Assembly (NCBI GenBank): GCA_965112735.1
Contig: OZ218958.1
Location: 868,001 to 932,000 of the forward strand
Length of the DNA: 64,000 nt
Direction of reading: 5' to 3'
Origin: Phaeosaccion multiseriatum
Lineage: Eukaryota > Protista > Ochrophyta, other classes
Shown here: one piece after another, positions 15,923 to 64,000 of the stretch
Layout of the letters: each line of letters opens with the position of its first letter
Position numbering within the stretch: position 1 is the stretch's first letter
The notes under the pieces: generated by a model
Databases searched by the model: none
Seen by the model: the letters and a program-made list of their open reading frames with translations, nothing else
Told to the model about the DNA's origin: nothing
Program-made: the position numbers and the translations under genes

Positions 15923-17415
15923 ATGAAACAAGAGGGAGAGAGTAGAACGAGAGGAGAGAAGAGCAAAGGGTGCAAGAGAAGCAAGGAGGTGCGCGAGGAA
16001 TGGTGTCCGGAAAGCGATTTGTACCCAGCTCAGGCGAGCGGGAACGAGGATACCTCCGACGCGACTCGAGTGTTGCACATCGTCCGGAAGACTGTGGGTC
16101 CCGTTCAGGCTCTCTGGGGGCTGTCTACATCCATTGACAGGTGCTTGAATCGTGCCATCCCATGCGTGGATGCTCAGTTTTCATGCGCTGCCTTTCCCTC
16201 CGTGTGCACGATACTTATTCCGCATCCTTTGCTCTGCCTCCTCTCCTTGCAAAGGCTCACACCCAGAAGGGCGGTCCTTCATCGGTTCGTGCCCTCCAAC
16301 GTCAGACATAGCCTCATGCGCATGCTAGGCATCACCACAACAATGACGGAGTGGGGTTGGAGCGAAGGCCGTGCAGGAGATGACGAGGTGGACTGGCGGC
16401 AGTGGGAAGACGGGCAGATTCCACTCAGCCCGGAGAACGAGGACAAGGAGGAGGAGGACGGAGAGGAGGAGGCAGAGGAAGGGGACGAAGCCGAGAGGGC
16501 CAAGCAGAATGGACAGTACGACGAAGAGCAGGTGCCCTTCCCCATTCCAGCCGTGCGCATCGGAGCCACCGACGAAGAGGTTCAAGAGCACTCCTGCTCG
16601 CTCTCTGAAGTGGAGCCTGGTAGAGAGGAAGAACCTCTCTCGGCCACTGCGGCCTCTCTGGACCTCCTCGCCACGCTGCCTCGCACGGTTACGAGTGTCA
16701 CACTCGTCGGAGCGGCCTGCAGCAGCAGATGGGCGCCCCTTATCACCCCACGGTGGCTGAAGAAGCTCACTCTGGGCTCGTCGTTCGATCAGCCACACCA
16801 TCCTCTGATGCTGCCCGACTCGCTCGAGGAGCTGGTGTTCGCCGAAGACTGTGTGTTCGACGGCCCCCTGGCGCTGCCTTCCTCGCTCAAGAAGGTCACA
16901 TTTGGCTCTCGATTCAATCAGGCTGAGCTGGAGCTGCCAATTGGGTTGGAAGAGCTAGAGTTTGGCTGGTCCTACAACCACAGTATTGACTGCCTCCCCT
17001 CGACATTGCGCAGGCTTGTGCTGGGCCACGACTTTGATCGAGACGTGAGCCTGCCGCCCTCGCTGGAGGTGGTTGAATTCGGCTATTGCTTCAATAGCAA
17101 CATCACCTTTATCGCCTCACAGCAGCAGCAAACAGACGGTGGCGCTCATGATGGCATTGAGATCAAGAGGGAGGAGGAGCAGGAGCATGGTGCGAGGAAG
17201 AGTAGCTGCAGCAGCAGCAGCAGCTACGGCAGTCCTGACACGAGCAGTAGGTTGCAGAGCATGACGTTCGGAGACGTGTTCTCCCGTGCCCTGCCAACCA
17301 TCCCTGCGTCTGTGAAGCGCCTTGATTTCGGTGCTAGCTTCGACATGCTTCATCTTACTCCATTGCCAACGGCTCTGAGAGAGCTGCGACTGCGCTGCCC
17401 CCGCCTCGGCGCAAT

Positions 17416-17452
<37 letters not shown>

Positions 17453-18019
17453 GAGCAAGAGCAGAGTCCGGAAGAGTACGAGCATCAGCAGGAACACGAG
17501 CAAGGGCAGCACGACGAGCACGACGGCGACTACGCCCCTGCTGCCTCTTGCACTGCTGCCAATGGAGGAAGGAACACCACCCTCCCCACGCCCACCAACA
17601 CCCTCACATATCTGAGCCTCCCACCGCAGCTGACAACGCTCCACCTTCGCACCACAAGCAGCACCCGCCTGGGCCCCCTCGACCTCCCCTCTACGCTGAA
17701 GGAGCTATGGCTCGTGGGTGGGCCCTACACACACCCCCTTGTGCTTCCTTCCTCTCTAGAGAAGCTCCGTCTCTGTGAGTACTCCCTTCCCCTACGCTTG
17801 CCCGCCTCGCTCCGTGAGTTATGGTGGCTAAGTGGGACAGGCTGTCACTCGCCACCGCCTCGCGTGAAGCTTCCCCGAGGCATCGAGTTGGTTGTGTGCA
17901 TGTTGCCCACTGTGAGGCTCTTGACTTTGCCCCTCGGGGTCAAGGAGTGGCAGCGAAGCAGGGGTAGGGGCAGCTTAGTCCATGTTACTTTCCAGCGCCC
18001 CCCGCGGGGTCGGGCTTGA
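15923..18019 (+). CDS. FNIP (LRR-like) repeat protein, divergent paralogue with one probable intron (16141-16254)
   Basis: Repeats such as LPDSLEELVFAEDCVFDGPLALPSSLKKVTFGSRFNQAELELPIGLEELEFGWSYNHSI. Removing GACAG|GTGCTT...TTGCAAAG|G gives VLHIV...LWGLSTSIDRLTPRRAVLHRFVP, which aligns with VLDTV...LWGVSRALDEVTSRTLVLNSAVP in the FNIP genes at 53.6 and 59 kb. Confidence 0.85.
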
Positions 18020-53496: not shown

Positions 53497-53650
53497 CACG
53501 ATCTTCTGTACCGCATCAAAGGCATGGCACCTACCGTGTGAATCGTGGAGCACCAAAACGCCCGCAGCCGGGTTTTTTCCACCAGACTTACCTCTTGCTC
53601 TTTTGTACCGCGGCGCTAGGTGGCTCTCAGCAAGAGGACTGGGAAGAGCA

Positions 53651-55942
53651 ATGAAGCGCCGCGCTCAGGAGTGCCGGCAGCAGGGAGAGGCGGGAGAGGC
53701 GGGGAGGATGATATCTCACAGTCCCCGGCAGCAGAGCGCCGCTGGTTCCTCTACTGCGTGCACCGTCCAAGCTGGGGACAGCAGGAGCCAGACTGTAGCG
53801 GCCTGGGGTGTTCTTGATACCGTACTGCGGAGCAAGGAACTTTGGGGTGTCAGCCGGGCCCTCGATGAGGTGACATCACGCACTCTCGTGCTGAATTCTG
53901 CTGTACCCGCCCCTGTCCAACAGCATATGCTCGGTCTCCTCCGGTGGCAGCAGCGGGAAGAGGAGAAGCACACTCGTGCATCACCATCTCTAGCGGCAGA
54001 GGTGGGGGCCGTTGGCAGTGGAGAGGGAGAGGGAGGCCTGGGGGGAGGCAAACCGAGACGCACGTTCGGCATTGCAGCTGTGCGCCTGGGCCCCAGCAGG
54101 AGCTACTTTCATGGTCTCGATCTGGCCTCCGCTGACGAAGCTCTGGTCGCGAAGGCGTTGGCGCTATTGTCGGCATCGGTCAAGCGTGTGTGCTTCTCGG
54201 ACCATTTCAACCAAGGTAACATCACGTTACCAAGAACCGTGGAGGAGGTGCAGATGGGGGGGGCCTTCAATCTCCCTTTGGATCTCCCCGCCTCGCTGAA
54301 GAAGATCACATTTGGCGAAAGGTTCAATCAGCACGTGGTCCTTCCTTGCGGTGTGGAGGAGGTGGCGATGGGGCGTGACTTCAACCTCCCTTTGGACCTG
54401 CCTGCTTCGCTGAAGAAGATCACATTGAGCGGAAGGTTCAATCAGCACGTGGTCCTTCCTTGCGGTGTGGAGGAGGTGGCGATGGGGCGGGACTTTAACC
54501 TCCCTGTGGACCTGCCTGCCTCGCTGAAGAAGATCAGATTTAGCGATTGCTTCAATCAGCACGTGGTCCTTCCTTGCGGTGTGGAGGAGGTGGACATGGG
54601 GTGGGACTTCAACCTCCCTCTGGCCCTGCCTACTTCGGTGAAGAAGATCAGTTTTGGCGGACTATTCTATCAGCACTTGGTCTTTCCTTGCGGTGTGGAG
54701 GAGGTGGTGATGGGTTGGGTTTTTAACCTCCCTGTGGACCTACCTGCTTCGCTGAAGAAGATCAAATTTGGTCTTGACTTCAAGCAGCATGTGGTCCTTC
54801 CTTGCGGTGTGGAGGAGGTGGAGATGGGTAGGGACTTTAACCTCCCTCTTGAGCTGCCCGCTTCGCTGAAGAAGATCACATTTGGCGCAAGGTTCAGTCA
54901 GCACGTGGTCCTTCCTTGCGGTGTGGAGGAGGTGGACATGGGGTGGGACTTTAACCTCCCTCTGGCCCTGCCTACTTCGCTGAAGAAGATCACATTTGGC
55001 GAAAGGTTCAATCAGCACGTGGTCCTTCCTTACGGTGTGGAGGAGGTGGCGATGAGGCGGGACTTTAACCTCCCCCTGGCCCTGCCTGCTTCGCTGACGA
55101 AGATCACATTTAGCGAAAGGTTCAATCAGCACGTGGTCCTTCCTTGCGGTGTGGAGGAGGTGGAGATGGGGCATGACTTTAACCTTCCTTTGGCCCTGCC
55201 TGCTTCGCTGAAGAAGATCAGATTTGGCGGAAGATTCAATCAGCACGTGGTCCTTCCTTGCGGTGTGAAGGAGGTGCATATGGGGCGTGACTTTCACCTC
55301 CCTCTGGCCCTACCTGCCTCGCTGAAGAAGATCACATTTTGCATGAACTCGCGATTCAATCAGCACGTGGTCCTTCCTTGTGGTGTGGAGGAGGTGGACA
55401 TGGATTGTGACTTTAACCTCCCTTTGGCCCTGCCTGCTTCGCTGAAGAAGATCAGATTTGGCAGGAACTCGAAGTTCAATCAGCACATGGTCCTTCCTTG
55501 TGGTGTGGAGGAGGTGGAAATGGGTTGTGACTTTAACCTCCCTTTGGCCCTGCCTGCCTCGCTGAAGAAGATCAGATTTGGCGGACTATTCAATCAGCAC
55601 GTGGTCCTTCCTTGCGGTGTGGAGGAGGTGGAAATGGGTTGTGACTTTAACCTCCCTTTGGAGCTGCCTGCCACGCTAAAGAAGATCACATTTGCCGAAT
55701 GCTCGCACTTCAATCAGCACGTGGTCCTTCCTTGTGGTGTGGAGGAGGTGCAGATGGGTAGGGACTTTAACCTCCCTCTGGCCCTGCCTGCTTCGCTCCA
55801 GAGTCTATGGTTGGGAAGGAACTACACTTGCCATTTGGAGCATCTGCCTGCTGGCCTGAGGGATTTTACGGTTGGGCGGGGATGTCCTCTGCCTGCAGAT
55901 CGTCCCGAGGGGCTTCTGGTCAAGTACCATGGCTCTTTATGA
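53651..55942 (+). CDS. Intronless FNIP/LRR-like repeat protein, copy A (13 near-identical 38/40-aa repeats at 54284-55783)
   Basis: Repeat consensus LPASLKKIxFxxxFNQHVVLPCGVEEVxMGxDFNLPLx; the array is 1500 nt = 10x114 + 3x120. Likely ATG at 53651 (MKRRAQE). The ORF-track extension to 53324 overlaps the opposite-strand C2 gene. Confidence 0.9.
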   Translation: MKRRAQECRQQGEAGEAGRMISHSPRQQSAAGSSTACTVQAGDSRSQTVAAWGVLDTVLRSKELWGVSRALDEVTSRTLVLNSAVPAPVQQHMLGLLRWQQREEEKHTRASPSLAAEVGAVGSGEGEGGLGGGKPRRTFGIAAVRLGPSRSYFHGLDLASADEALVAKALALLSASVKRVCFSDHFNQGNITLPRTVEEVQMGGAFNLPLDLPASLKKITFGERFNQHVVLPCGVEEVAMGRDFNLPLDLPASLKKITLSGRFNQHVVLPCGVEEVAMGRDFNLPVDLPASLKKIRFSDCFNQHVVLPCGVEEVDMGWDFNLPLALPTSVKKISFGGLFYQHLVFPCGVEEVVMGWVFNLPVDLPASLKKIKFGLDFKQHVVLPCGVEEVEMGRDFNLPLELPASLKKITFGARFSQHVVLPCGVEEVDMGWDFNLPLALPTSLKKITFGERFNQHVVLPYGVEEVAMRRDFNLPLALPASLTKITFSERFNQHVVLPCGVEEVEMGHDFNLPLALPASLKKIRFGGRFNQHVVLPCGVKEVHMGRDFHLPLALPASLKKITFCMNSRFNQHVVLPCGVEEVDMDCDFNLPLALPASLKKIRFGRNSKFNQHMVLPCGVEEVEMGCDFNLPLALPASLKKIRFGGLFNQHVVLPCGVEEVEMGCDFNLPLELPATLKKITFAECSHFNQHVVLPCGVEEVQMGRDFNLPLALPASLQSLWLGRNYTCHLEHLPAGLRDFTVGRGCPLPADRPEGLLVKYHGSL

Positions 55943-55958
55943 TGATGATGAATGGCGG

Positions 55959-55991
<33 letters not shown>

Positions 55992-56308
55992 GGAGGAGGA
56001 GGAGGAGGAGGAAGAAGAAGAAGAAGAAGAAGAAGAAGAAGAAGAAGAAGAAGAAGAAGAAGAAGAAGAAGAGGAGGAGGAGGAGGAGGAGAACGATAAT
56101 GTCTATGTCTAGGAGGTGTCTATGTCTAGGAGACGTGCCTGGAGGAGGTGCAGCTCGCTCCATGAGAATACAACGCATGAAACAAAGCCACTGTCAGGGG
56201 CAGGGTCAGGGGCAGAGTCAGGGGACGACGACTGACGAGAGTGAGGCGCGGACCGAGGCGGAGACGTGGGGGAGAGGGGGCGGGAGGTAACGGGGAGAGG
56301 CAGCACTG

Positions 56309-58053
56309 ATGAGGTTCCTCATCCTCACCCTCGTACCGCTTTGGCCCCTCGGAGGAGGAGCAGAGGAGGAGAAGGGTGTGGACGGACAGGGACAGAGAGC
56401 CCAAGGTGAGCAGAGCCCCCTCCCCGCCCTTCGACTTACGTGCCAGCTTCCACGGTCTGCGACCACAGCAGAATCCATCAAGCATCTACTACAAATGTTT
56501 CGTGTTGCAGGACTCTCCTGTAGCTTGCTTTGACCTCTCTACTCTCCAACACCGCTGCCCTCTCCACCTACAGTAGCAGCAGCATAAGCATCAACAGCAG
56601 CAGCAGCAGCAGCAGCAGGGAAGACTTCTTGCGGATGACTTCAGTGCTGTCTGATACGCTCGTGGGGGAGCAGTACGGTGTGGGAACCGTAGACGACGAG
56701 ATCGGTCTCACCAGGTGAGGCAGTCGGCTTCTGGCCGTCCTCTCTCTCCCTCTCACCCGTACTTTGTTTCCATCTGTCTCCTCTCTCCCTCGCTCCCTCC
56801 GTTTCTGACCCCCCCCCCTCTGTCTCTCCATCTACATCTCTCTCTGACGGTTTAAGCTTTCGTTGTGTCTCTCCCTCCCTCTGTCTCACCCTCTGTACCC
56901 CTTTCTCTCCCTCCCTCCCTCCCTCCCTCCCTCCCTCCCTCCCTCCCTCCCTCTCTCCCTCCCTCTCTCCTTGTCTCCCTCCCTCCCTCCCTCCCTCCCT
57001 CTCTTCCATGCCGCAGGCCTGTCAAGACCACCCCCCTGAGCCTTGTTCCCTTGGTGGTAATGGTGGAGGGCGTCCTCACTGGGGCAGAGTGTGCGGAGAT
57101 TGTCAGCATCGGTAAATCGAAGGTGGAAGCTTCCCACGTAATGGGGAAGGCAGGGTCAAAGTCGAGGTGAGCCGATGCTGCTCCCTGCTCCAGCAGGGGG
57201 GTATGCATATGGTGGGAAAGAAGGGGTGCGTGAGTGCGTGTGTGTGTGTACGTATGTATATATGTGTATATGTGTGTTTGGGTGTATGTGGCCGCCATGC
57301 TCTGCTGTCATGCTCGTGGTGGTGGTTCTCTTCCCGCGCGTTGGGATGCAGTGCGTATTACCACAGAGAGCAGCAGCTCTGGAGGACCACCTTGTGCTGA
57401 CTTGTCTTGCTAAGCGTCTCTCTCTCTCCCCCTCTTCTCTCTCTCTCTTTCTCTGTCTCTTCCCCTCTCCCTCCCTCTCCCTCTCTCTCTGCTCTGTCCT
57501 TCATCATCTGTTGGTGTGTAATCGCAGAGTGAGTGAGAGTGCGTTCCTACCGTATGGGGTGGGAGGAGACAAGTCCATTCTCCGCACCCATCGAGACCGA
57601 ATCGAGAACATCTTGGCGTTTCGGCCAGAGTAAGTAATCCCCCTTTCGGCGCCATCATCACTCTCCACCTCCTTGTCCTGCCCTCCTCCGCCCCCCTTGT
57701 GGTAGCTCCGACCACCCTCACACCGGATATCCACGCACACAACACACCAATATTAGCCCCCCACCCACTGCCATCCATCCATTGCCATCCCCCTCCCTCC
57801 AGGAGCCGTCTTCTCGGCGGGCTGCTAGGACGTGCAGCTTGTGCATTACGAAGAAGGAGGCCGCTTCGACGTACACCACGACTCCACAGCCTTCCACCCC
57901 CGCTACCTCACCGCCCTGGCCTATCTCAACGACGTGCCCGGAGAGGGAGGCGGGATGTGGTTTCCGGTTGCCAATGGAGGGGAAGCTGTCGATACCGGTG
58001 ATGGTGGTCAGGAATGTGAGGAAGGGGGTGAGGGAGGGGGCCAACAAGAAGGT

Positions 58054-58092
<39 letters not shown>

Positions 58093-58308
58093 GGAGTAGA
58101 AGCAAGACGAGGCGAAGGCGGCGTGATTGTGACGCCCAAGCTGGGATCGATGGTGGTGTTTTTCAATCACAAGCCTACTGGGGGTGGGGGTGTGGATGGC
58201 AGTGGAGGGGTTGATGCCGTGTTGGACGCTTCGGCTGTGCATGCAGGTTTGCCCCTCGCCGCCGGACAGAGCAAATGGGTCATGAATCTGTGGTGGAAGC
58301 CCCCTTGA
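56309..58308 (+). pseudogene. Prolyl 4-hydroxylase (2OG-Fe(II) dioxygenase), copy A, disrupted; 5' end uncertain
   Basis: Exons encode LSLVPLVVMVEGVLTGAECAEIV, RVSESAFL, VQLVHYEEGGRFDVHHD (HxD), RYLTALAYLNDVPGEGGG, VIVTPKLGSMVVFFN, AVHAGLPLAAGQSKW (distal His, 2OG-binding Lys). Relative to copy B it has an extra C at ~57806 and GAG>TAG at 57826-57828. Confidence 0.8.
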
Positions 58309-59047
58309 TGCTGGAGGATGATGCCGTTGATGATGCGGTGATGGTGATGGTGATGGTGATGACGATGACGGGCGGACCCACGCCACACACACAAGCACAC
58401 GCCAAATACTATAGACAACAGTGGAGTCTTTTTCGTCCTCAACACAGAGGTCCGTGCGAGCAACGACCTTCTCGATCATGTACCGGGACGTGTCAGAGGG
58501 ATGGAGGGCCAGTGTCCGGTTTCAGTGTCCTGTTTGTCCTGTTCTCGGTCGGGTTCATCCATCCTCTCTGAGCGAGGCCACAGCGGCAGACTCTGAGCTG
58601 CAGTTGAAGGCGACATGACACCTCCTTCGCTGCTGCTCTTACTGCTCCCACTGCGTCGGTTACCGCTCCTCTTGCTACAGAGCAAACAGAGCATTGGAAT
58701 GAAAAGAGAGTGGGGGGGGGGGGGGGGTATGAAGTGCCATCCATGGTTTGCCTAAAAGTAACAACAGCCCTTGTGTCGAATCGAACGTTCGTACCGGGCT
58801 CACTCTGGAGCGCCACTGTGGGAGGAAGGGCACCGACCGTGTGAATCGTGGAGGACCAACACGCCCGCAGGCCGAAGGAGCTGACTTCCTCTCTTGCTCT
58901 CTTGTACGGCGGCGCTGGGTGGCTCTCAGCACCGCGGCCCCCACCCTGTGTTCCCCTCTTTCCCCAAAGCTTAGAGGACTGGGAAGAGCAATGAAATGCC
59001 GCATTCAGGAGTGCCGGCAGTAGGGAGAGGCGGGAGAGGCGGGGAGG

Positions 59048-61168
59048 ATGATATCTCACAGTCCCCAGCAGCAGGGCGCCGCTGGTCCCTCTACTGCGTG
59101 CACCGTCCAAGTTGGGGACAGCAGGAGCCAGACTGTAGCGGCCTGGGGTGTTCTCGATACCGTACTGCAGATCAAGGAACTTTGGGGTGTCAGCCGGGCC
59201 CTCGACGAGGTGACATCACGCACTCTCGTGCTGAATTCCGTTGTGCCCGCCCCTGTCCTACAGCATATGCTCGGTCTCCTCCGGTGGCAGCAGCGGGAAG
59301 AGGAGAAGCACACTCGTGCATCACCACCTCTAGCGGCAGAGGTGGGGGCCGTTGGCAGCGGAGAGGGAGAGGGAGGCCTGGGGGGAGGCAAACCGAGACG
59401 CACGTTCGGCGTTGCAGCTGTGCGCCTGGGCCCCAGCAGGAGCTACTTTCATGCTCTGGATCTGGCCTCTGATGGCGAAGCTCTGGTCACGAAGGCGTTG
59501 GCGCTATTGCCGGCATCGGTCAAGCGTGTGTGCTTCTCGGACGATTTCAACCAAACGAACATCGCATTACCAAGAACCGTGGAGGAGGTGCAGATGGGGC
59601 GGGACTTCAATCTCCCTTTGGATCTCCCCGCTTCGCTGAAGAAGATCACATTTGGCTGGAGGTTCAATCAGCACGTGGTCCTTCCTTGCGGTGTGGAAGA
59701 GGTGCACATGGGGTGGGACTTTAGCCTCCCTGTGGAGCTGCCTGCCTCACTGAAGAAGATCACATTTGGCGATTGCTTCAATCAGCACGTGGTCCTTCCT
59801 TGCGGTGTGGAGGAGGTGCACATGGGGTGTGACTTCAACCTCCCTCTGGCCCTACCTGCCTCGCTGAAGAAGATCACATTTGGCGGAAGATTCAATCAGC
59901 ACGTTCTCCTTCCTTGCGGTGTGGAGGAGGTGCACATGGGGTGTGACTTCAACCTCCCTTTGGAGCTGCCTGCCTCGCTGAAGAAGATCAGCTTTAGCGG
60001 AAGCTTCAATCAGCACGTGGTCCTTCCTTGTGGTGTGGAGGAGGTGGAAATGGGGTGTGACTTTAACCTCCCTCTGGATCTCCCCGTTTCGCTGAAGAAG
60101 ATCGCATTTAGCATAAGGTTCAATCAGCACGTGGTCCTTCCTTGCGGTGTGGAGGAGGTGCACATGGGGTGTGGCTTCAACCTCCCTTTGGAGCTGCCTG
60201 CCTCGCTGAAGAAGATCACATTTGGCGATTGCTTCAATCAGCACGTGGTCCTTCCTTACGGTGTGGAGGAGGTGCGCATGGGTAGGCACTTTAACCTCCC
60301 TTTGGAGCTGCCTGCCTCGCTGCAGAAGATCACATTTAGCAAAGGGTTCAATCAGCACGTGGTCCTTCCTTGCGGTGTGGAGGAGGTGCAGATGGGGTGG
60401 GACTTTAACCTTCCTTTGGCCCTGCCTGCTTCGCTGAAGAAGATCAGATTTGGCGGAAGATTCAATCAGCACGTGGTCCTTCCTTGCGGTGTGAAGGAGG
60501 TGCATATGGGGCGTGACTTTCACCTCCCTCTGGCCCTACCTGCCTCGCTGAAGAAGATCACATTTGGCATGAACTCGCGATTCAATCAGCACGTGGTCCT
60601 TCCTTGCGGTGTGGAGGAGGTGGACATGGGTTGTGACTTTAACCTCCCTTTGGCCCTGCCTGCTTCGCTGAAGAAGATCACATTTGGCAGGAACTCGAAG
60701 TTCAATCAGCACGTGGTCCTTCCTGGTGGTGTGGAGGAGGTGGAAATGGGTTGTGACTTTAACCTCCCTTTGGCCCTGCCTGCCTCGCTGAAGAAGATCA
60801 GATTTGGCGGACTATTCAATCAGCACGTGGTCCTTCCTTGCGGTGTGGAGGAGGTGGAAATGGGTTGTGACTTTAACCTCCCTTTGGAGCTGCCTGCCAC
60901 GCTAAAGAAGATCACATTTGCCGAATGCTCGCACTTCAATCAGCACGTGGTCCTTCCTTGTGGTGTGGAGGAGGTGCAGATGGGTAGGGACTTTAACCTC
61001 CCTCTGGCCCTGCCTGCTTCGCTCCAGAGTCTATGGTTGGGAAGGAACTACACTTGCCATTTGGAGCATCTGCCTGCTGGCCTGAGGGATCTTACGGTTG
61101 GGCGGGGATGTCCTCTGCCTGCAGATCGTCCCGAGGGGCGTCTGGTCAAGTACCATGGCCCATTATGA
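59048..61168 (+). CDS. Intronless FNIP/LRR-like repeat protein, copy B (12 repeats at 59624-61009)
   Basis: The array is 1386 nt = 9x114 + 3x120. The ATG homologous to copy A (58991) is followed by CAG>TAG at 59021-59023, so the open frame begins at M59048. Confidence 0.85.
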   Translation: MISHSPQQQGAAGPSTACTVQVGDSRSQTVAAWGVLDTVLQIKELWGVSRALDEVTSRTLVLNSVVPAPVLQHMLGLLRWQQREEEKHTRASPPLAAEVGAVGSGEGEGGLGGGKPRRTFGVAAVRLGPSRSYFHALDLASDGEALVTKALALLPASVKRVCFSDDFNQTNIALPRTVEEVQMGRDFNLPLDLPASLKKITFGWRFNQHVVLPCGVEEVHMGWDFSLPVELPASLKKITFGDCFNQHVVLPCGVEEVHMGCDFNLPLALPASLKKITFGGRFNQHVLLPCGVEEVHMGCDFNLPLELPASLKKISFSGSFNQHVVLPCGVEEVEMGCDFNLPLDLPVSLKKIAFSIRFNQHVVLPCGVEEVHMGCGFNLPLELPASLKKITFGDCFNQHVVLPYGVEEVRMGRHFNLPLELPASLQKITFSKGFNQHVVLPCGVEEVQMGWDFNLPLALPASLKKIRFGGRFNQHVVLPCGVKEVHMGRDFHLPLALPASLKKITFGMNSRFNQHVVLPCGVEEVDMGCDFNLPLALPASLKKITFGRNSKFNQHVVLPGGVEEVEMGCDFNLPLALPASLKKIRFGGLFNQHVVLPCGVEEVEMGCDFNLPLELPATLKKITFAECSHFNQHVVLPCGVEEVQMGRDFNLPLALPASLQSLWLGRNYTCHLEHLPAGLRDLTVGRGCPLPADRPEGRLVKYHGPL

Positions 61169-61526
61169 TGATGCTGATGAGGATGAATGACGATGATGAT
61201 GATGATGATGATGATGATGAGGAGGAGGAGGAGGAGGAGGAAGAAGAAGAAGAAGAGGAGGAGGAGGAGGAGGAGGAGGAGGAGGAGGAGGAGAACGATG
61301 AGGAAGAGGAGGAGGAGGATGATGAAGATGGCGATGTCTATGTCTAGGAGACGTGCCTGGAGGAGGTGCAGCTCGCTCCATGAGAATACAACGCATGAAA
61401 CAAAGCCACTGTCAGGGGCAGGGTCAGGGGCAGAGTCAGGGGACGACGACTGACGAGAGTGAGGCGCGGACCGAGGCGGAGACGTGGGGGAGAGGGGGCG
61501 GGAGGTAACGGGGGGAGGCAGCACTG

Positions 61527-63499
61527 ATGAGGTTCCTCATCCTCACCCTCGTACCGCTTTGGCCCCTCGGAGGAGGAGCGGAGGAGGAGAAGGGTCTGGA
61601 AGGACAGGGACAGAGAGCCCAAGGTGAGCAGAGCCCCCTCCCCGCCCTTCGACTTACGTGCCAGCTTCCACGGTCTGCGACCACAGCAGAATCCATCAAG
61701 CATCTACTACAAATGTTTCGTTTGCAGGACTCTCCTGTAGCTTGCTTTAACCTCTCTACTCTCCAACACCGCTGCCCTCTCCACCTACAGTAGCAGCAGC
61801 ATAAGCATCAACAGCAGCAGCAGCAGCAGCAGCAGCAGGGAAGACTTCTTGCGGATGACTTCAGTGCTGTCTGATATGCTCGTGGGGGAGCAGTACGGTT
61901 TGGGAACCGTAGACGACGAGATCGGTCTCACCAGGTGAGGCAGTCGGCTTCTGGCCGTCCTCTCTCTCCCTCTCACCCGTACTTTGTTTCCATCTGTCTC
62001 CTCTCTCCCTCGCTCCCTCCGTTTCTGACCCCCCCCCCTCTGTCTCTCCATCTACATCTCTCTCTGACGGTTTAAGCTTTCGTTGTGTCTCTCCCTCCCT
62101 CTGTCTCACCCTCTGTACCCCTTTCTCTCCCTCCCTCCCTCCCTCCCTCCCTCCCTCCCTCCCTCTCTCCCTCCCTCCCTCCCTCCCTCCCTCCCTCTCT
62201 TCCATGCCGCAGGCCTGTCAAGACCACCCCCCTGAGCCTTGTTCCCTTGGTGGTAATGGTGGAGGGCGTCCTCACTGGGGCAGAGTGTGCGGAGATTGTC
62301 AGCATCGGTAAATCGAAGGTGGAAGCTTCCCACGTAATGGGGAAGGCAGGGTCAAAGTCGAGGTGAGCCGATGCTGCTCCCTGCTCCAGCAGGGGGGTAT
62401 GCATATGGTGGGAAAGAAGGGGTGCGTGAGTGCGTGTGTGTGTGTACGTATGTATATATGTGTATATGTGTGTTTGGGTGCATGTGGCGGCCATGCTCTG
62501 CTGTCATGCTCGTGGTGGTGTTTCTCTTCCCGCGCGTTGGGATGCAGTGCGTATTACCAGAGAGAGCAGCAGCTCTGGAGGACCACCTTGTGCTGACTTG
62601 TCTTGCTAAGCGTCTCTCTCTCTCTCCCTCTTGTCTCTCTCTCTCTTTCTCTGTCTCTCCCCCTCTCCCTCCCTCTCCCTCTCTCTCTGCTCTGTCCTTC
62701 ATCACATATTGGTGCGTAATCACAGAGTGAGTGAGTGAGAGTGCGTTCCTACCATATGGGGTGGGAGGAGACAAGTCCATTCTCCGCACCTTTCGAGACG
62801 GAATGGAGAACATCTTGGCGTTTCGGCCAGAGTAAGTAATCCCCCTTTCGTCGCCATCATCACTCTCCACCTCCTTGTCCTGCCCCCCCCCGCCCCCCTT
62901 GTGGTAGCTCCGACCACCCTCACACGGGATATCCACGCACACAACACACCAATGTTAGCCCCCCACTCACTGCCATCCATCCATTGCCATCTCCCTCCCT
63001 CCAGGAGCGTCTTCTCGGCGGGCTGCGAGGACGTGCAGCTTGTGCGCTACGAAGAAGGAGGCCGCTTCGACATACACCACGACTCCACAGCCTTCCACCC
63101 CCGCTACCTCACCGCCCTGGCCTATCTCAACGACGTGCCCGGAGAGGGAGGCGGGACGTGGTTTCCGCTTGCCAATGGAGGGGAAGCTGTCGATACCGGT
63201 GATGGTGGTCAGGAATGTGAGGAAGGGGGGAGGGAGGGGGCCAACGAGAAGGTGCAGCAGCAGCAGCAGCAGCAGCAGCAGCGGGAGTAGTAGCAAGACG
63301 AGGCGAAGGCGGCGTGATTGTGACGCCCAAGTTGGGATCGGTGGTGGTGTTTTTCAATCACAAGCCCACTGGGGGTGGGGGTGTGGATGGCAGTGGAGGG
63401 GCTGATGCCGTGTTGGACGCTTCGGCTGTGCACGCAGGTTTTCCCCTCGCCGCCGGACAGAGCAAATGGGTCATGAATCTGTGGTGGAAGCCCCCTTGA
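61527..63499 (+). pseudogene. Prolyl 4-hydroxylase, copy B (frameshifted as assembled, possibly intact in vivo); 5' end uncertain
   Basis: GCEDVQLVRYEEGGRFDIHHD is intact. It has an extra GTGA at the exon acceptor (~62726-62740) and one base fewer than copy A in the G run at 63225-63230, which shifts AVHAGFPLAAGQSKW out of frame. Confidence 0.7.
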
Positions 63500-64000
63500 T
63501 GCTGGAGGATGATGCCGTTGATGATGCGGTGATGGTGATGGTGATGACGATGACGGGCGGACCACACACCACACACCAACACACGCCGAATACTGTAGAC
63601 CGCAACAAGGTTGTGGAGTCTTTTTTGTCCTCAACACAGAGTTCCGTGCGAGCAGCGACCTTCTCGATCATGTACCGAGATGTGTCAGAGGGATGGAGGG
63701 CCAGTGTCCGGTTTCAGTGTCCTGTTTGTCCAGTTCTCCGTCGGGTTCATCCTCTCTGATCGAGGCCACAGCGGCAGACTCTGAGCTGCAGTTGAAGGCG
63801 ACATGACACCTCCTTAGCTGCTGCTCCTACTGCTCCTACTGGGTCGGTTACCGCGCCTCTTGCTACTAGAGAAAACAGAGCCTTTGGGTAAATATTTATC
63901 CCTAGGAGAGAGAGAGAGATTGGGGGGGGGGCGGAGGTCTTGAAGTGCCATCCATGGTTTGCCTAAAAGTAACATCTCACCCTTGTGTCGAATCGAGGGT

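Follow-up and report, generated by a model that had tools for sequence, protein, structure and literature searches.

A recent exchange tract with a junction inside the repeat array probably accounts for near-identical distal repeats in tandem FNIP genes of Phaeosaccion multiseriatum

The stretch analysed in this study (64,000 nucleotides, hereafter the window) covers C9:868001-932000 of a chromosome-scale assembly of the alga Phaeosaccion multiseriatum (67 Mb in 22 contigs; GenBank GCA_965112735.1, contig OZ218958.1). It carries two tandem genes, A and B, that encode proteins built from FNIP leucine-rich repeats (LRRs), and a third copy, C, lies directly beyond the window end; repeat units are written below with the letter of the copy and a number. 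An earlier note on this DNA had reported that the last five repeats of A and B are almost the same whereas the first repeats are unlike, and this split between near-identical distal and differing proximal repeats is confirmed here as a real observation. The distal identity is probably the mark of a recent exchange tract between A and B, with a junction inside the array, in a tandem cluster that is prone to such exchange. Recent gene conversion of the 3' part, which the earlier note had named as its second choice, is supported by a 2.3-kb tract that continues into non-coding DNA and by switches of the closest pair on its flanks. All results derive from the sequence of a single haploid assembly.

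Both genes strongly match the Pfam family PF05725 (FNIP), with E = 1.4e-70 and 233.6 bits for B and E = 1.3e-66 and 220.9 bits for A at a cut-off of 21, and when split at the FNQ motif their units are 38-40 amino acids long each. In the repeat phase originally used, the distal five repeats (A 55196-55783, B 60422-61009) differ at 5 of 196 amino acids, and the C-terminal cap that follows them at 3 of 52. The eight proximal repeats of A and the seven of B have zero combinations of variable residues in common, the nearest pair being four amino acids apart, and the markers LPYG and LTK/LQK-ITFS were found as claimed. At the DNA level, units A10-A14 are 98-100% identical to B9-B13, and A9 is 96% identical to B8; between A2-A8 and B2-B7 there is no diagonal, and the maximum of 92% equals the paralogue background between any two units. 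Self-BLAST gives an offset between the copies of 5340 for the 5' part but of 5226 for the 3' part; the two values differ by one 114-nt repeat. The additional claim that the flanking non-coding DNA is near-identical proved true of the 3' flank as far as about 57500 (99%), but not of the 5' flank (95%) or of the remaining unit (94-97%, with 89% and many gaps at the unit tail).

The tract of near-identity is about 2.3 kb long and extends 1.5 kb beyond the stop codon at the same divergence of about 1% (dAB, the divergence between A and B, ~0.01). Copies A and B differ at 21 of 2,006 sites within the tract and at 76 of 1,664 flanking sites (Fisher p = 3e-11), and a permutation runs test for A-B agreement gave p < 5e-5. 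Inside the tract, the repeats and cap carry 10 differences in 768 nt (1.3%) and the adjacent non-coding DNA 11 in 1,199 nt (0.9%; Fisher p = 0.5), and coding and non-coding divergence alike are 4-5 times below the value outside. The left junction falls in unit A9/B8, where the hypervariable codons 15 and 18 (defined below) differ on an identical scaffold; in one of these two codons, every base differs. On the right, a base-by-base alignment shows the agreement of A with B giving way to agreement of B with C just 3' of a (TC)n microsatellite. Because the non-coding and the synonymous sites are as near-identical as the rest (the synonymous difference, pS, of the scaffold along the distal diagonal is 0.010), the distal repeats are young, not constrained.

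These figures bear directly on the proposal that strong purifying selection has frozen the distal repeats, which might form an invariant module for signalling or capping, and left the proximal ones free to vary. A landmark unit of 40 amino acids before the cap does recur in several paralogues, and plant receptor-like proteins do have a fixed C-terminal LRR block (PMC4030839). However, similarity is just as high over the 1.2 kb of non-coding DNA next to these repeats, nine of the ten distal nucleotide differences alter the amino acid, synonymous sites are just as alike, and copy C has wholly different distal units and a cap at 87%; selection as the cause is therefore extremely improbable. An assembly or polishing artefact, in which the reads of one copy corrected the other or the array was mis-joined, was also considered, since assemblies are liable to errors in repeat arrays and tandem duplications, and the analysis rests on an assembly rather than on reads. 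It is nevertheless very unlikely: the 21 substitutions are scattered over the tract and accompanied by microsatellite length differences, unlike a copied block, the assembly is of chromosome scale, and a similar mosaic occurs at an unlinked pair of paralogues 424 kb apart.

As to the kind of exchange, the near-identity spans 2.3 kb and not 5.3 kb, which favours a tract of the conversion type over an unequal crossover of unit length. Such a crossover as the source of the A-B identity would need about 5.3 kb of near-identity; outside the 2.3 kb, the unit shows 3-6% divergence and the closest pairs are different ones. A single unequal crossover as the source of the three copies was rejected, since identity over the length of a unit is absent and the chimeric order of B (resembling A at its left and C at its right) reverses the product of such a duplication. 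Gene conversion rather than some other form of exchange would thus be the preferred process, and any direction given to it would be equally conditional.

The mosaic of closest pairs was read from an alignment of A, B and C in which each variable site was classed by the pair that agrees (A+B / A+C / B+C). The 5' flank (53633-54205) holds 14/14/14 such sites, and every pair is 4.9% apart. From 55121 to 57500 the counts become 87/9/9 (ATG/GAA microsatellites at 55943-56150 omitted), and from 57501 to 58310 they are 10/5/26; a short segment closest between A and C follows (Table 1). The closest pair along the unit therefore runs in the order star, A+B, B+C, A+C, with strong heterogeneity (chi-square p = 1.5e-19), and outside the tract the three copies are about 5% apart.

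The three tandem copies represent a cassette of 5.2-5.3 kb, which probably evolves through repeated non-allelic exchange between them, whether in gene conversion or in other short tracts of recombination; segments differ in their closest relative because such exchange recurs. On this reading, a single recent tract between A and B, with junctions in A9/B8 and at the (TC)n microsatellite, has the distal five repeats at its 5' end, and the proximal arrays lie outside that event. Proximal content would differ through the gain, loss and exchange of whole 114-nt units, together with diversification of eight hypervariable codons on a conserved scaffold. The array differs more in content than the surrounding DNA because units turn over, hypervariable codons diversify and the flanks were probably homogenised.

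Table 1. Positions of the tandem units, genes, exchange tract and mosaic segments, in window coordinates
Feature	Position	Strand	Description	Basis
Tandem unit A	53633..58972	+	5,340 bp; FNIP-repeat gene and 2-oxoglutarate-Fe(II) (2OG-Fe(II)) oxygenase open reading frame (ORF)	self-BLAST offsets
Tandem unit B	58973..64170 (window stops at 64000)	+		self-comparison and sequence beyond the window
Tandem unit C	window-equivalent 64171 to ~69400	+	directly after unit B, beyond the window end	
FNIP gene A	53708..55942	+	counted from the ATG common to B; in-frame upstream ATG at 53651	
Repeat array of gene A	54206-55822	+	14 units, then C-terminal cap	
FNIP gene B	59048..61168	+	13 units at 59546-61048, then cap	
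Proximal interior units A2-A8	54323..55120	+	no orthologue in B	
Proximal interior units B2-B7	59663..60346	+	no orthologue in A; best genome-wide multi-unit match 89%	
A=B tract, copy A	55175..57500	+	end of A9, A10-A14, cap, stop codon, 1.5 kb non-coding	
A=B tract, copy B	60401..62698	+	left-end offset 5226	right end from alignment
(TC)n microsatellite at right end of tract	57417..57495 (B copy 62613-62693)	+	switch from A+B to B+C immediately 3'	
Segment with B+C closest	57501..58310	+	dBC 0.036, then 0.006; includes oxygenase ORF	
Segment with A+C closest	58311..58620	+	sites 1/12/5	
2OG-Fe(II) oxygenase ORF	57832-58308		PF13640 match; one such ORF per unit	

In the proximal arrays, no orthology between A and B was detected on either register, whether by whole-unit identity, by the scaffold alone or by synonymous differences of the scaffold. 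The synonymous difference of the scaffold is 0.173 when A_k is set against B_k, 0.157 when A_k is set against B_k-1 and 0.171 off register, and both on-register values exceed the flank-level expectation of about 0.05 (binomial p = 6e-6 and 4e-7, respectively). Since these values equal those of any pair of units, units at matching positions are different whole units. The claim that the proximal array diverged faster than its surroundings thus stands insofar as it differs more (0.16-0.17 vs about 0.05 in the flank), but not as faster substitution; being equal to the value for any unit pair, 0.16-0.17 reflects non-orthologous whole units or homogenised flanks. Comparison of A and of B with C likewise yielded no proximal orthology apart from A5-A6 (54665-54892), which match C5-C6 at 96-97% with a pS of 0.024. 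Further unit-level similarities join B8 with C8 (96%) and B6 with C2 (95%), and in a paralogue located at C9:1,034 kb, units 1 and 3 match C1 and C3 at 98%.

Exact donor repeats for the proximal units, which had been proposed as a check, and near-exact ones as well, were absent from unit-level BLAST searches of the fetched paralogues and from genome-wide searches. The best multi-unit matches in the genome reach 90% and 89% for the two proximal arrays, and the best full-length unit matches among all fetched paralogues are at most 96%. Duplication within an array does occur in the family: a gene near C9:382 kb contains a block of three units present three times at 99-100%, and is a case of very recent in-array expansion. 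In the segment inspected (C9:377001-387000), a frameshift splits this gene, at about 381.8-384.8 kb, into two ORFs, and the repeated block includes a 57-amino-acid unit in which half a repeat has been lost.

Genes A and B are members of a subfamily of about 11 close paralogues, in a genome with roughly 150 FNIP genes. Eight further close paralogues, at 86-90% DNA identity, lie on contigs C9 and C13, and dozens of additional FNIP paralogues are found in the genome at about 80%. Among the close paralogues, the 1,034-kb and 610-kb genes form the unlinked pair noted above. Within this pair, identity is 97-99% in the distal units, and divergence stays at 1-3% over more than 6 kb of 3' flank. The proximal arrays are scrambled, the N-termini differ by about 4-6% and the sequences further upstream are unrelated; here too the junction falls inside the array. 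In copy C and the 1,034-kb gene it is the 5' end that is shared (N-terminus 97.7%, units 1 and 3 at 98%), and the 1,023-kb and 610-kb genes have both flanks in common with scrambled arrays. The directional process that had been put forward is not borne out: with two 3' events and one 5' event, polarity does not appear to be a property of the family.

In its fullest form, that directional account holds that the whole unit was duplicated recently, about 1% of divergence ago, and that 5'-biased gain and loss of units, or conversion from other paralogues, then overwrote the proximal repeats together with the N-terminal region and left the distal part untouched. Several observations agree with it: the A/B pair and, independently, the 1,034-kb/610-kb pair share distal units and 3' flank and are scrambled proximally, subfamily-wide homogenisation of the N-terminal region makes 5'-anchored ectopic conversion plausible, and unit 1 of B most resembles unit 1 of other paralogues. 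However, rewriting within the last 1% should have left donors of at least 98% identity, well above the best multi-unit and single-unit matches given above. Whole-unit duplication also does not predict the 3' end of the tract at 57500, where B becomes nearest to C, and what copy C has in common with the 1,034-kb paralogue is the 5' end. Directional rewriting is therefore an unlikely source of the pattern. A related proposal, that exchange itself is polarised because tracts begin in the microsatellite-rich 3' flank and end inside the array, agrees with two of the three recent events but is comparably doubtful; if true, polarised exchange would repeatedly set one distal module and cap under varying proximal recognition arrays, a built-in form of module swapping.

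The two ends of the genes have separate histories. The N-terminal region is 93-98% identical among nine C9 paralogues (dS, the synonymous divergence, 0.03-0.12), and the caps form two classes with a dS of 0.4-0.9 between them; this contrast shows that gene ends with different histories were joined by recombination within arrays. Because the N-terminal region is homogenised across the subfamily, no date for the duplication can be taken from the 5% divergence seen in the 5' flank.

Several points weigh against the reading of the distal repeats as a recent A-B exchange tract. The 5% in the 5' flank may be an equilibrium of family-wide conversion rather than an age of the split of A, B and C. Any direction or number of events read from a single haploid assembly would be provisional. 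The 3' side is what is shared in two of the three recent exchanges seen in the subfamily, and a mild 3' bias may therefore be present (n = 3). Finally, the results come from custom site-pattern and permutation tests rather than from GENECONV, RDP or GARD, and the arrays, where the three-way alignment is ambiguous, were excluded from the site-pattern tests.

Per-codon entropy over 93 units separates eight hypervariable codons (15, 18, 19, 25, 34, 36, 37 and 38) from a near-fixed scaffold. Entropy reaches 3.0 and 2.7 bits at codons 37 and 38 and 2.9 and 2.0 bits at codons 18 and 19, and is mostly below 0.6 at scaffold codons. In the motifs FGxxFN and MGxxFN, the 'xx' is encoded by codons 37-38 and 18-19, respectively, and the 'xx' residues of FGxxFN have been published as the most variable positions of this LRR class (PMC9525666). 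Over all unit pairs, the Nei-Gojobori dN/dS (dN, non-synonymous divergence) is about 1.3-1.37 at the hypervariable codons (dN 0.59, dS 0.44) and 0.18-0.2 in the scaffold, a pairwise estimate from non-independent pairs rather than a site-model likelihood. In units whose orthology is defined by context, 9 of 96 hypervariable codons and 9 of 330 other codons carry non-synonymous changes, that is, 3.7 times more often at the hypervariable positions (p = 0.008). The codon patterns thus point to diversifying selection on the hypervariable codons and conservation of the scaffold, and selection may also help to maintain the difference between the proximal arrays.

Eight hypervariable codons set in a fixed scaffold also recall programmed diversification, whether cassette-based or by targeted mutagenesis, in the manner of lamprey variable lymphocyte receptors or of antigenic variation, here acting on the proximal repeats. 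The replacement of several nucleotides of a codon beside identical scaffold (CAT/TGG in A9/B8) could be taken in the same sense. However, no donor cassettes were found, as no unit among the fetched paralogues exceeds 96% and no multi-unit match in the genome exceeds 90%; in both pairs, the multi-nucleotide changes coincide with tract junctions, as a recombination joint predicts, and synonymous sites of the scaffold differ as well. Such a system is accordingly highly improbable here, and interparalogue exchange with a junction in the repeat array suffices to explain the split between 'frozen' and 'rewritten' repeats without a new mechanism.

The pattern of exchange is one already long described for the tandem LRR resistance genes of plants. 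Clusters such as those of the tomato receptor-like proteins Cf-4/Cf-9 and Cf-2/Cf-5 and the 'type I' nucleotide-binding-site LRR genes likewise consist of tandem paralogues that vary in the number of N-terminal LRRs and in solvent-exposed residues; their C-terminal block is fixed or near-identical, and exchange and gene conversion produce chimeric genes without clear orthology. The differences between Cf-4 and Cf-9 are reportedly limited to the N-terminal half. Cf-2 and Cf-5 are six LRRs and 78 substitutions apart, with a variable block N1 and a block N2 that always has four (PMC4030839), and conversion, birth-and-death evolution and positive selection have been described for plant resistance genes (PMC3113787). 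The genes studied here differ in belonging to the FNIP/FGxxFN class of LRR, in which 19-amino-acid half-repeats are paired into 38-amino-acid units, in that A and B have no visible signal peptide, transmembrane segment or NB-ARC domain, and in that the host is a protist alga; the likeness to immunity genes is one of evolutionary pattern alone.

Two other comparisons are informative. With the FNIP/FGxxFN LRR proteins of known structure (PF05725; crystal structures of Crov588 and Crov539, PMC9525666), the present genes share a strong Pfam match, the FGxxFN motif and its variable 'xx' residues; that study is structural work on giant-virus and Dictyostelium proteins, without exchange at the level of a locus. 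With the concerted evolution of tandem arrays, as in mammalian TLR1/TLR6 (PMC2077338) and Trypanosoma brucei (PMC1855330), they share low-divergence tracts between neighbours and incongruence along the unit; unlike those arrays, the junction of the A/B tract lies inside an internal repeat array, which results in a chimeric repeat protein. Overall, this protist FNIP-LRR family evolves like plant LRR resistance clusters, with chimeric genes, changes in unit number, hypervariable surface codons and conserved ends. This provides useful context for proposals that FNIP genes serve as a recognition repertoire, and it warns that identity of the flanks is unusable for dating duplications in this family.

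The ends of the individual genes also vary. In B, a TAG at 59021-59023 replaces the CAG of A (53681-53683) and of C; it separates the ATG at 59048 from an upstream ATG (MKRR...) that is used in frame by A, by C and by further paralogues. Because of this stop codon, either translation of B begins at the second of these ATGs or B lacks 19 residues at its N-terminus. At the other end, the stop codon of A and B is a TGA formed where an (ATG)n(GAN)n microsatellite begins (55925-56112 and 61150-61347, respectively). The long acidic D/E tail is out of frame in both genes, a loss that they have in common and that lies inside the exchange tract; in copy C and in the 1,034-kb and 610-kb paralogues, the reading frame continues across the microsatellite as a C-terminal poly-D/E tail.

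The N-terminal domain contains a motif of about 45 amino acids (59108-59317 in the window), …LWGV[CS]K.VDEVTSRTL…MP..VQ.RML.LL, which is common to FNIP subfamilies that are 33-38% identical there. Searches of this domain against Pfam returned no match, including to the F-box, even at E = 10, and a profile of nine paralogues had no match among Protein Data Bank sequences. Its AlphaFold model is poor (pLDDT, the per-residue confidence, 63) and unfit for a fold search; among its language-model neighbours from the ESM Atlas, an F-box is carried only by weak ones (scores at most 0.87).

Elsewhere on the contig, large and partly inverted segmental duplications at C9:1,018-1,068 kb and 603-633 kb contain several FNIP genes and an extra copy of the oxygenase segment that is 92-95% identical to units A-C. 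Within the window, an additional FNIP-like ORF of 698 amino acids at 15923-18019 has irregular repeats and low-complexity inserts and is far more divergent than A and B.

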